Below are positions 38,701 through 41,700 of a DNA stretch of 64,000 bases, piece by piece. Position numbers and translations under genes: made by a program. This DNA comes from Lama glama (lineage: Eukaryota). The stretch is from assembly GCA_028534125.1 (NCBI GenBank), contig CM052837.1, positions 37,138,001 through 37,202,000 of the forward strand, read 5' to 3'. Each line of letters opens with the position of its first letter. Position 1 is the stretch's first letter. Under the pieces are notes generated by a model. It was given only the letters and a program-made list of their open reading frames with translations. It was not told where the DNA came from and searched no databases.

Positions 38701-41700
38701 CTGTCCACCAGGCGGTCGCCCCGGGAGACGGCATCCTCTAGGGGAACACAGTACTGGATGCTCCGAGACCGGCACCGTACGCCGCCCTCTGCTGCTTCGT
38801 TGGGGCTGGACATGTGCTGGACGCTCAGGGACCTGGCCTTGATGAGCCCTGGGGCCTGGGTGCTGGTGGGTGGGCGGCAGGGCCGAGGCGAAGGGCAGGG
38901 GCTAGCTGTCCCAGCCTCTGAAGGCTGCAGAGTGGGGACCTGGTCCGAGGGCGACTGGCAGGCCGGCTGGGGCTTGACTGGCTGGTCTGGGCCACAAGAC
39001 GGGGAGGGGGAGGGGCCCCTGCTTTCGAGGTGGGCCTGCCCTTGGGGCTCCGGCCAGAAGCGTGGGGCACTGGCCGCCTTGTGCATGGACTCAATGAGCC
39101 GCCGGCAGTTGTCCTTGACCACGGATGGCCGCTTCATGAGGAGCAGGCGCGGCACGACGTCCAGGAAAACGCGGCGGACCCAGGCGGGCATGGTGTGCGT
39201 GCGCGGGGAGCGGTGGTGCACGTTGAGCACGAAGACCGTGATGACGATGGAGAGTGTGACGAAGATCATGGTGAAGAGCAGGTACTCGCCGATGAGCGGG
39301 ATGACCAGCGAGGTGGACGGGATGATCTCGGTGATGAGCAGCAGGAAGACGGTGAGCGAGAGCAGCACGGAGATGCAGAGCGTGATCTTCTCACCGCACT
39401 CGGACGGCAGGTAGAAGACGAGCACGGTGAGGCAGGAGATGAGCAGGCAGGGGATAATGAGGTTGACCGTGTAGAAGAGCGGCAGGCGGCGGATGACGAA
39501 GTAGTAGGTCACGTCCGCGTAGACCTCCGCGCAGCAGTCATACTTCTTGGTGTTGTAGGTGCCGGCGGCGTTGACGATGGCCCACTCGCCGCTCTCCCAG
39601 TAGTCCTTCAGGTCCACCATNNNNNNNNNNNNNNNNNNNNNNNNNNNNNNNNNNNNNNNNNNNNNNNNNNNNNNNNNNNNNNNNNNNNNNNNNNNNNNNN
39701 NNNNNNNNNNNNNNNNNNNNNNNNNNNNNNNNNNNNNNNNNNNNNNNNNNNNNNNNNNTTGCACCCGCCCGTCGTGGAAGAGGTGGGCCTTGGTCAGGTG
39801 GGTGACAGCAAAGTCCCCGTCCGCGCTGGGTAGGAGAGAGAGCGTGGTGAGACGTCCCCGCCTGCCGCAAGTGCACCCCCACCTCCCGGTGGCTCTGCCG
39901 GGGGTGGGGCGGGGCTGGGCTGGGCCTGCGGCCCACCTCGGCTGTCACCCCTGCGCCGGGGCCGACATACGGCGGGGACTGTCTCCGCCGTCCACACCAT
40001 ACTCGACACCCACGCTTGCTGCTGGTGATGACAGTGGTCATCTGGGCTGAAGCAGCCATGTCGAGAGCTCCAGACGCACAAGTGGCCCCCGGGCAGCACT
40101 CAGAATGCCTCATCCCCTGCGGTCACTCGGGGCTGGGCCAAAGTTGGAGTGAGACCTATCTGGCCACCTTCTCCTGCCCCAGACCGTGCGTGCCAGTGAC
40201 GCTGAGCACTCAGCACCTTCCCCCACTGACCCTTCCCTGAACCTGAGGCAGGAAGGACCCCCCCTTCCTGCACAGGTGAGAACTCTGGGGCCCGACAAGG
40301 CAAAGACCAGGCCAGGCCTCCTGAGTGGGACATGGACACCACCCATCACATTCCAGGCCGTCAGCCCTCCTGCCTCCCCCTCAGCCCGGGGGCCTTGTCC
40401 ACAGGCCGGGGTGGGCGGCAGGGTGAGGGGTGCTGTCCCCGGCCCTTCTGCTGCGGGCAGAACACCCAGCCCGCAGCCCTGGTGCTGGGCCTCCCTGACA
40501 GTGCCATCCACCTCAGTTTTCTTCACCAAAGATGTCCACAGAGGGGAGGGCCACAGCACAATGAGAGGGGAGGCAGCCAGCCTGTGGGGACACGGGGACA
40601 CCCACACACAGCTCCCCAAGAGTCCCGTTTGCTCCAGAAGGGGGCCACTCTCTCCTTTGCACTGGATGCGCCTGGCCCCCAGTCTGGGTCCTGAGTGGGT
40701 GTAACCTGGACCTTGGGGGGCGGGGAGGGGCACTCTGTCAGCCTCAGTTTCCCCATAAAGACTGAGCTGTCCACTCCGGGTGTGGTGCCCACAGACACAC
40801 GGAGGCGACAGCCATCCCCCTGCCAGCTTCGGCTCTGAAACGTGGCCTGGAGACCTCCTCTCGTCCCCCCAGGACATCCCCGCAGACAGCTGGTCCCAGG
40901 ACTGAGGCACTGGACGCTGGTCATCACGCTTCTTTGTCTCCACGACATGTGCTGAGGGTGCATCTGGCCCCAGGAGGTCCTCAGAAGGGCCCGGAGCTGG
41001 CCTTTCGCTCTGTACTAGGGAGCCAGCCGCCCGGCAGAGCCCCAGGAAGGAGCAGCTCTCCCCGAGGAATGTTGTCACCACCGCATCAGTCCTCGTTCCT
41101 CTTCCCGCAGCTGCATCTACCATGCCAGCGGAGACAAAGCACCTCTCCACACTGCCTGGTCCCACATCCCACTCCCAGCAGGGCTGTGCCCCTGGAAAGC
41201 CCAGGGGGCGTGGACGTCAGGACGGAACGGCCCGACTGTGAGCCTGTTCCGGACCTACCACAGGAGCTGTGGCCAGCACGGGCGGGAAAGGAGGACCCGG
41301 TCCTGGGCAGCCCAGGTTCCTGCTCCAGAGATGCCCATCCACATAAGATCCCCAGCCCGAGGGGCCAACGTAGGGGAGCCCCCCAGTGGACAGCACGGCC
41401 TCTGGCCTGACTTAGCCCAGGATGCTAGGTCCTGGGGCACGGGGAGCTGGGGGAGCTGAGTGTGAACCCCAGGGGGACGGGGCAGGGGGAACTGGAGGAC
41501 TCCAGGGCTCAGGGTCGGCCCAGGCGGCCTGCAGAGGGAGCACAGAGAGCCCGCCCCACCTTCCACTCACCGAGCTGGGCCCCCTTCGCGCCTTTGTGCT
41601 GCCCCACAAACCGTCCCCCTCGCACGCGGCTGCTCTTCCTGCTGCCATGGCTGGAATCAATTAAGTTGGGAAGGAGCCCAATCGTTCTTAATCAAACAGC

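Follow-up and report, generated by a model that had tools for sequence, protein, structure and literature searches.

An alpha2-type ligand-binding segment in the CHRNA4 gene of the llama and other camelids, probably acquired from CHRNA2 by gene conversion

The CHRNA4 gene in the window

The high-affinity nicotine receptor that predominates in the mammalian brain is alpha4beta2, a receptor with a strongly conserved extracellular domain. The DNA analysed here, hereafter the window, is a stretch of 64,000 nucleotides from Lama glama (assembly GCA_028534125.1, contig CM052837.1, forward-strand positions 37,138,001 to 37,202,000), and a true CHRNA4 gene is present in it on the minus strand. Exon 5, delimited from the read sequence, its translations and tblastn of camelid alpha4 models, occupies 38454–39825 including 138 masked bases, with a splice acceptor AG at 39827–39826 and a donor GT at 38453–38452. 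Exon 4 (42750–42860) and the last exon, exon 6, which encodes M4 and the C-terminus (35661–35783), are each 100% identical to camelid alpha4 models by tblastn. Exon 5 was the sole part of the gene used for protein database searches; the best 120 matches to its translation are all alpha4, by name or, for the few unnamed ones, by sequence, and identity reaches 97% to Camelus and 99% to Vicugna alpha4. As in mammalian CHRNA4 (5KXI, 6CNJ), the exon structure, the M1–M3 region, the long cytoplasmic loop and the C-terminal exon are all in place. The gene also appears to adjoin a collagen/VWA gene, as expected for the COL20A1–CHRNA4 neighbourhood, with one VWA-domain exon on the plus strand at approximately 11.66–11.80 kb of the window; Pfam scans of open reading frames from 47–64 kb did not detect a KCNQ2 exon.

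Within exon 5, several minus-strand segments carry alpha4 identity. The start of the exon, covering the loop E region (39759–39825), is alpha4-type: the translation of 39759–39830 yields an alpha4-type piece ending in ...HLFHDGRVQ, and the diagnostic columns of Camelus alpha4 are in the alpha4 state through residue 152. At the other end lies the alpha4-specific cytoplasmic loop (38454–39209), identified by translation and protein matches. Between them, M1–M3 (39210–39485; codons 46–137, counted after the mask) encodes a protein nearly alike in alpha2 and alpha4; it equals human alpha4 save for one Val/Ile residue in M1, and a 150-residue query returns alpha4 as its top match (phmmer against PDB). 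An earlier sequence-only reading had described the flanks as alpha4, and this description holds for M1–M3, the cytoplasmic loop and the piece upstream of the mask alike.

An alpha2-type tract covering loop F to loop C

The exception is a block next to the mask. Its visible part, codons 1–40 (39501–39620, minus strand), was recognized by translation, phmmer and diagnostic columns, and its 40 residues run from loop F through strand beta9 to loop C, where the vicinal Cys pair lies. The loop C motif, Y-D-C-C-A-E-V-Y, aligns to Y197, C199, C200 and Y204 of 5KXI, so that the Cys pair and surrounding aromatics of an alpha-type nicotinic subunit are present. Minus-strand translation of 38454–39620 reproduces exactly the exon 5 peptide that the sequence-only reading had quoted, and the alpha2 and alpha4 sequences that it had cited for comparison prove essentially right in phmmer alignments to the human structures. 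Its central claim, an alpha2-type ligand-binding segment on CHRNA4 exon 5, is likewise borne out: over 44 residues the tract scores 85.2 bits with 39/44 identities (hand-counted from the alignment) against the human alpha2 extracellular domain (5FJV), compared with 70.9 bits and 32/44 against human alpha4 (5KXI), both by phmmer against PDB. When database proteins are ranked by the tract alone, three Camelus alpha4 models come first, followed almost only by alpha2-named proteins. The likeness to CHRNA2 is confined to the tract, everything outside it being alpha4.

Compared with mammalian alpha4, the visible stretch of loop F, beta9 and loop C has replacements at about 12 of 44 residues. Relative to human alpha4 (5KXI numbering, from the alignment), the changes are Q174L, L175K, F177Y, V184A, D187N and V189A, followed by R195K, E198D, P205A, I207V and A210Y. 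Identity is 43/44 to ruminant alpha2, 41/44 to alpaca alpha2 and 31–33/44 to other artiodactyl alpha4. What sets the tract apart from CHRNA2 is an Ala of its own in the Y-P-D motif and, in the window and in Camelus, Ala at a position where alpha2 has Thr. The tract is marginally nearer to ruminant than to alpaca alpha2, with a Thr and an Ala in common with ruminants, which means that camelid alpha2 or alpha4 must have changed afterwards. A Met at the first visible codon, also present in alpaca alpha2 and found in none of the eight other artiodactyl alpha2 proteins examined, points to the camelid's own alpha2 as the donor.

The masked stretch and the question of artefact

The visible part of the tract is bordered, on its 5′ side, by a run of 138 N (39621–39758), and the sequence-only reading had considered an artefact at least as likely because the tract abuts this gap. 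Reading of the sequence and comparison with Camelus models overturn that assessment. All Camelus alpha4 models have 46 residues between the same two landmarks, and 138 N are exactly these 46 expected codons, so that the run is a mask of exact length and not an assembly gap, and the suspicion raised by the adjacent gap does not hold; elsewhere the window has two N-runs, each of 500 N. The mask hides the 5′ end of the tract together with the Cys-loop block, and it is in the equivalent stretch that the Camelus models pass from alpha4 to alpha2 states. The typing of loops as alpha2 or alpha4 covered loops A, C, D, E and F, loop B lying under the mask and in an uninformative zone.

The same tract occurs in the CHRNA4 models of Camelus bactrianus, C. 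dromedarius and C. ferus, and the Vicugna pacos model carries it with one residue changed, bringing the camelid assemblies with the tract to five, the window included. The alpha2 states of the tract occur in 0 of 115 non-camelid alpha4 proteins, which include those of Bos, Bubalus, Oryx, Sus, Catagonus and whales. Could an assembler or a reference-guided step nevertheless have crossed from CHRNA4 into CHRNA2 through M1–M3? Paralog DNA approximately 93% identical over that region, and the contact of the tract with an N-run, would make such a crossing conceivable, but the tract recurs in CHRNA4 models of four further assemblies from different species, ranging from an old C. ferus scaffold of 740 kb to chromosome-scale scaffolds. 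Moreover, the residues in the tract that differ from alpaca alpha2, two in alpaca alpha4 and three in the window, mean that it was not copied from alpha2 reads. An additional, weak point against artefact is that 14 DNA runs (five organism labels, seven studies) hold 0.91–0.98 of the words sampled from 37000–39620, these words not being specific to the tract. An assembly or annotation artefact is close to refuted and retains hardly any probability. Of the two options that the sequence-only reading had offered, interlocus conversion of an alpha2 loop F/loop C gains support, while assembler crossing loses it in view of the four other assemblies, the non-identity of the tract to alpha2 of its own lineage and the exact length of the mask. 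At the level of sequence, the alpha2-type segment in camelid CHRNA4 is confirmed as a real, inherited natural chimera and not an assembly error. Neither CHRNA2/CHRNA4 conversion nor camelid CHRNA4 turned up in the literature searched.

Clustering of alpha2 states and conflicting trees

Sixty columns of the protein alignment tell alpha4 from alpha2 and served as diagnostic columns. Camelid alpha4 has 11 alpha2-type states, of which 10 are packed into 13 consecutive columns of the 60, a block with 10 alpha2 states and 3 other states; clustering this tight arose in 1 of 200,000 shuffles (Bonferroni bound 1.9e-6). Outside the block, the Camelus models show the alpha4 state at 45 of 47 diagnostic columns, with a similar count in the Vicugna model, and there is one isolated alpha2-type site, in exon 2, besides single lineage-specific residues. 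Alpaca alpha2, in turn, has the alpha2 state at 59 of the 60 columns and the alpha4 state at none, which makes the exchange one-way. Segment identities of Camelus alpha4 follow the same pattern. Residues 30–152 are 97–99% identical to alpha4 and 71% to alpha2, and residues 178–240 are 94–95% identical to alpha2 and 68–71% to alpha4. For residues 336–628 the values are ~78% for alpha4 and 50% for alpha2. Both flanks of the tract, 153–177 and 241–335, are about equally near the two paralogs, at 92–100% identity.

Phylogenies of the tract and of the remaining protein disagree. In the tract tree, camelid alpha4 stands on the alpha2 side with support of 100/100, and forcing camelids with the other artiodactyl alpha4 costs 44 lnL and is rejected (p-AU 1.2e-6), while the rest-of-protein tree places camelid alpha4 inside alpha4, beside whale and bovid alpha4. 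A weaker AU test on the tract, in which camelid alpha4 and all other alpha4 are held to one side of a branch, is not significant (p 0.18), and its mirror on the flanks gives p 0.46; these branch-split tests are uninformative because a basal position of camelids in a paralog clade is enough to satisfy the split, and a species-tree constraint was used in place of the branch-split one.

DNA-level evidence and the unlikely alternative of convergence

For comparison at the DNA level, a bovine-type alpha2 (L014) and a bovine alpha4 (L001), both contigs from a metagenome, served as references; the metagenome, scanned with positions 38787–39620 of the window, contributed 28 loci, none of them taken for human, and those used matched cattle, birds and a fish. 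The alpha2 reference comes without codons 1–24 and opens with 17 non-coding bases; the tract comparison covers codons 25–45, where the window differs from bovine-type alpha2 at 5 of 63 bases and from bovine alpha4 at 14 of 63. Over M1–M3, where bovine alpha2 and alpha4 DNA are 92.8% identical to each other, the relation reverses, with differences at 15 of 276 bases from bovine alpha4 and 20 of 276 from bovine alpha2. Of the informative sites, 11 in the tract are alpha2-type and 2 alpha4-type, against 7 and 23 downstream (Fisher p 4e-4), and these sites place the 3′ breakpoint zone at 39480–39503 (minus strand), with the last alpha2-type site in codon 40 and the first alpha4-type sites in codons 47–48.

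An alternative to DNA transfer is that selection for alpha2-like ligand binding changed approximately a dozen residues singly, through convergent point substitutions. The synonymous sites of the tract, which are not clearly alpha2-like, would fit such a history: only 3–4 of them are informative and these split 2:2 if the third base of codon 35 is included, and in synonymous codons the window differs about equally from the two paralogs. However, the extreme GC-rich codon usage common to both genes means that synonymous sites alone do not discriminate. Also in keeping with convergence, the Tyr, Asn and Lys at codons 7, 17 and 25 are states found in non-mammalian alpha4 as well, and the Ala of the Y-A-D motif is encoded by GCG, which is not the GCC of bovine alpha2 and lies one step from an alpha4 Pro codon CCG (inferred from bovine TCG). 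Against this, several replacements involve two or three base changes in a codon and end on exactly the alpha2 codon, as with AAG against CGC, TAC against GCC and AAG against CTG (alpha2 against alpha4). All of the changes, moreover, sit in one block bounded by paralog-identical sequence, the 45 of 47 unchanged columns elsewhere include those of loops D, A and E, and the block holds states absent from the 115 non-camelid alpha4 proteins. No functional reason is evident for the Met at the first visible codon, which among the artiodactyl alpha2 proteins examined is found in that of alpaca alone. Convergence is very improbable.

Probable gene conversion from CHRNA2

The sequence pattern, the zones of its breakpoints, its presence across five camelid assemblies and the conflict between trees are directly observed; we infer a mechanism, conversion and not point mutations, together with its timing: non-reciprocal gene conversion very probably carried CHRNA2 sequence into CHRNA4 in stem camelids. 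A stretch of CHRNA4 exon 5 would have been overwritten by the homologous CHRNA2 stretch in the common ancestor of camels and llamas. The converted tract is estimated at no fewer than ~60 codons (Camelus residues 178–238) and no more than ~93 codons, and would start within or just after the Cys-loop block, pass through loop F and strand beta9 and stop where loop C ends. Resolution of the exchange most likely took place in the near-identical blocks on either side, the Cys-loop block upstream and M1–M3 downstream. M1–M3 (39210–39485) in particular is a likely homology anchor, as paralog identity there could provide the homology for ectopic repair. The resulting product is an alpha4 subunit with an alpha2-type loop C on its principal face and an alpha2-type loop F on its complementary face; its pore, cytoplasmic loop and C-terminus are still alpha4, as are loops D, A and E.

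Repair templated by a CHRNA2 transcript, cDNA or retrocopy is a variant of this account. Since the tract lies wholly within a single exon, as a cDNA-templated event would allow, intron sequence cannot separate a genomic from a cDNA template. Nothing specific speaks against the variant, but ordinary ectopic conversion between the two genes suffices, and we regard the variant as very unlikely.

Interlocus, or ectopic, gene conversion between paralogs has been described for globins, opsins and other gene families, and human CHRNA2 and CHRNA4 lie on different chromosomes. Like the classic cases, the camelid tract is short, contiguous, one-way and donor-type, with sharp edges, boundaries of high donor–acceptor identity at both ends, an unchanged donor, and disagreement between the trees of tract and flanks. 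The difference is that CHRNA2 and CHRNA4 are ancient paralogs, in which the homology that permits exchange would stem from strong protein constraint and shared GC-rich codon usage and not from recent duplication.

Implications for camelid nicotinic receptors

First, the tract bears on how camelid sequence data are read. On the camelid CHRNA4 branch it will look like a burst of positive selection when dN/dS is scanned, and it will mislead the paralog assignment of short reads and exon-level annotation. More generally, ancient paralogs may still be able to exchange sequence where constraint and GC-rich codons keep exon DNA ~93% identical.

Second, the camelid alpha4 with alpha2-type loops C and F constitutes a natural chimera across a whole mammalian family. 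In the laboratory, alpha2 extracellular segments swapped into alpha4 gave functional receptors with a shifted ACh EC50 and changed estradiol potentiation (Jin & Steinbach, 2015; PMC4684330). The camelid gene is a natural version of these constructs, known here from its sequence; it differs in that the laboratory chimeras exchanged the loop D-to-A and loop E regions, whereas the camelid tract spans loop F to loop C, a region outside those mapped in that study. The camelid chimera is presumably functional and, as the sequence-only reading had proposed, may have altered agonist pharmacology. Which loops set the differences between alpha2 and alpha4 in sensitivity to agonists, antagonists and modulators? 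The camelid subunit could be used to ask this question.

Finally, an unlikely reading is that the conversion was kept because it changed the agonist response of camelid alpha4beta2, for example towards nicotinic alkaloids from food plants or towards endogenous modulators. If so, the parallel Pro-to-Ala change of loop C in ruminant alpha2 and camelid alpha4 would represent the same functional theme, and camelids would carry a pharmacologically distinct version of the main nicotinic receptor of the brain.

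The CHRNA4 chimera of camelids

The CHRNA4 tract is a real natural chimera, lineage-wide among camelids, in which exon 5 of an alpha4 gene carries an alpha2-type segment from loop F to loop C. Reading of the sequence places exon 5 on the minus strand from 39825 down to 38454, with its acceptor AG at 39827-39826 and its donor GT at 38453-38452. The alpha4-type start of the exon, translated from 39759-39830 (minus), ends in ...HLFHDGRVQ and is separated by 138 N (39621-39758) from the second translated piece, which opens within the tract (visible at 39501-39620; codons are counted from the first one after the N run). 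Other CHRNA4 exons are also found, and their order is as expected; chief among them are exon 4 (42750-42860, minus) and the last exon (35661-35783, minus), both 100% identical to camelid alpha4 models. The exon 5 translation agrees with the Vicugna pacos alpha4 model at 385 of 389 residues and with each of three Camelus models at 377 of 389, which assigns the window to a South American camelid or a very close relative. A 33-residue piece confined to the longer "isoform X1" models of Camelus alpha4 finds a 91% match at 36044-36142 (minus), downstream of exon 5 and ahead of the last exon, which may be an alternative or mispredicted exon. Near 11.7 kb, an exon-sized stretch (11661-11801, plus strand) matches the beginning of a von Willebrand factor type A domain (E 4e-10), which is consistent with COL20A1 adjoining CHRNA4.

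Translating 38454-39620 (minus) reproduces exactly the peptide quoted in an earlier, sequence-only reading, and its alpha2-like character holds: the 44 residues after the first Met are 39/44 identical to the human alpha2 extracellular domain (ECD; 5fjv, 85.2 bits) versus 32/44 to human alpha4 (5kxi, 70.9 bits). A 150-residue query has alpha4 as its best match, and M1-M3 of the window is that of human alpha4 except for a single Val/Ile difference in M1. A ranking of the whole protein database by the tract only puts the three Camelus alpha4 models on top; among the other matches listed, nearly all carry the name alpha2, with ruminant alpha2 (43/44) ahead.

The sequence-only reading had also weighed mis-assembly, in which the assembler crossed from alpha4 into alpha2, and rated an artefact at least as likely because the tract abuts an N gap. 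The other N runs of the window (4252-4751 and 27089-27588) are exactly 500 N each, the customary size for true assembly gaps. Because every Camelus alpha4 protein model has exactly 46 residues between the same two landmarks, the 138-N run is a mask of exact length rather than an assembly gap. Against an artefact, the tract recurs in the CHRNA4 models of C. bactrianus, C. dromedarius, C. ferus and V. pacos, and it occurs in none of 115 alpha4 proteins examined from outside the camelids, among them those of Bos, Bubalus, Oryx, Sus, Catagonus and whales. Furthermore, alpaca alpha2 (P0407) differs from the tract by two residues in alpaca alpha4 and by three in the window, so that mere misplacement of alpha2 sequence during assembly does not account for it. 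In 14 DNA runs with five organism labels from seven studies, 0.91-0.98 of sampled words of 37000-39620 are present, which supports a real tract weakly because the words are not specific to it. We consider an assembly artefact extremely improbable.

Extent and origin of the alpha2-type tract

To delimit the tract, 34 non-camelid mammalian alpha4 proteins, 30 mammalian alpha2 proteins, four camelid alpha4 models and alpaca alpha2 were aligned, yielding 60 diagnostic columns with a conserved residue in each paralog that differs between alpha4 and alpha2. Camelid alpha4 departs from the alpha4 state in 13 consecutive columns (Camelus residues 154-235; 10 alpha2 states and three other states) and in columns 37, 349 and 479, all other diagnostic columns being in the alpha4 state; alpaca alpha2 carries no alpha4 state among the 60. 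The clustering of alpha2 states was reached by 1 of 200,000 shuffles (Bonferroni bound 1.9e-6). Residue 37, in the exon 1-2 region (window ~45589-45882) far from the tract, holds an isolated alpha2-type state in all four camelid models, probably a chance substitution.

By segment, the N-terminal ECD (Camelus residues 30-152) is 97-99% identical to alpha4 and 71% to alpha2; the Cys-loop block (153-177, with Cys 163 and 177) is uninformative for both paralogs; the tract (178-240) is 68-71% identical to alpha4 and 94-95% to alpha2; M1-M3 (241-335) is ~97% identical to either; and the cytoplasmic loop and M4 (336-628) are ~78% identical to alpha4 and ~50% to alpha2. The 5′ breakpoint therefore lies within the stretch masked in the window. 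The 3′ breakpoint, placed by sites differing between bovine alpha2 and bovine alpha4 DNA, falls between codon 40 (39501-39503) and codon 47 (39480-39482).

Trees of the two paralogs place the tract with alpha2 and the rest of the protein with alpha4. In the tree of the 68 tract columns, the split separating alpha2 from alpha4 (support 100/100) puts camelid alpha4 together with alpha2, ruminant alpha2 being its nearest neighbours, and constraining it to group with the alpha4 of other artiodactyls lowers the log-likelihood by 44 units (p-AU 1.2e-6). In the tree of the other 521 columns it is nested within alpha4, closest to whale and bovid alpha4. Two looser AU tests are non-significant (p 0.18 for the tract, 0.46 for the rest) and in our view uninformative, because their constraint can be satisfied by shifting camelids to the base of a paralog clade.

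Comparison DNA came from metagenome contigs of host origin carrying bovine alpha4 exon 5 (L001) and bovine-type alpha2 exon 5 from codon 25 (L014), and bird alpha4 and alpha2 from further contigs of the same scan, none of them judged to be human; nicotinic receptor exons of host animals (cattle, birds and fish) occur in environmental metagenome contigs (L002-L007 and others). L014:1-17 departs from the alpha2 reading frame and is purine-rich and low-complexity, probably a contig-end artefact; L014 codons 1-24 were left out. Over codons 25-45 of the tract, the window differs from bovine-type alpha2 at 5/63 bases and from bovine alpha4 at 14/63, versus 20/276 and 15/276, respectively, over M1-M3. 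The alpha2:alpha4 split of informative sites is 11:2 for the tract against 7:23 downstream of it (Fisher p 4e-4). These data bear on convergent substitution in camelid alpha4, for which purely synonymous informative sites in the tract, at 2:2, leave room, being too few to decide, but several replacements involve two to three base changes per codon and land on the alpha2 codon (AAG/CGC, TAC/GCC, AAG/CTG). GC-rich codon usage is extreme in both paralogs. We find convergence very unlikely.

The best explanation, and very probably the correct one, is that CHRNA2 sequence was copied long ago into CHRNA4 by interlocus gene conversion in one direction, which corresponds to the first option of the sequence-only reading. 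Bovine alpha2 and alpha4 DNA are 92.8% identical over M1-M3 (7.2% of bases differ), which supplies the homology required for ectopic repair. Copying from a cDNA or other template is very unlikely. Over the same M1-M3 region, bird alpha2 and bird alpha4 (L006 and L002) differ at 18% of bases, and bovine alpha4 is 10.5% from bird alpha2 and 17% from bird alpha4, a pattern that looks like convergent GC-rich codon usage or repeated paralog exchange in mammals. Our literature search turned up neither a description of gene conversion between CHRNA2 and CHRNA4 nor one of camelid CHRNA4.

Donor, timing and later changes

Met at the first visible codon is common to alpaca alpha2 and occurs in none of the eight other artiodactyl alpha2 proteins examined; this match suggests that the donor was the camelid's own alpha2 and that the transfer followed the separation of camelids from the rest of the artiodactyls. 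Because the tract is found in camels as well as in the llama group, the conversion would predate their split. At codon 35 (39516-39518, minus), the loop C Y-P-D Pro is replaced by Ala in camelid alpha4 (GCG), the residue also found in ruminant alpha2 (GCC), with Pro in alpaca alpha2 and Ser in ruminant alpha4; the Ala arose independently in camelid alpha4 and ruminant alpha2, a parallel change that the alpha4 copy would have acquired after the transfer. Codon 19 (39564-39566) reads Ala (GCC) in the window and three Camelus models and Thr, the alpha2 state, in V. pacos alpha4; its first base lies within a CpG, and the Thr may stem from a simple transition in the alpaca, from polymorphism or from a further small conversion event. 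Another difference that postdates the transfer is a Ser in alpaca alpha2 in place of a Thr of the tract. The Camelus and alpaca alpha4 tracts differ by one residue, which suggests purifying selection on the chimera.

Predicted effect on the receptor

Read off the alignment to human alpha4 (5KXI numbering), the substitutions comprise Q174L, L175K and F177Y in loop F; V184A, D187N and V189A in beta9; and R195K, E198D, P205A, I207V and A210Y in loop C and the hinge. Those Tyr and Cys residues that contact the ligand are retained. From published structures, we take the changed residues to lie on either side of the agonist site on the principal face and also along the complementary face that serves alpha4-alpha4 interfaces. 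Chimeras of alpha2 and alpha4 made in the laboratory in other ECD loops work, with a shifted ACh EC50 (PMC4684330), and by analogy with them the camelid alpha4 receptor would be expected to work, with modestly altered pharmacology.
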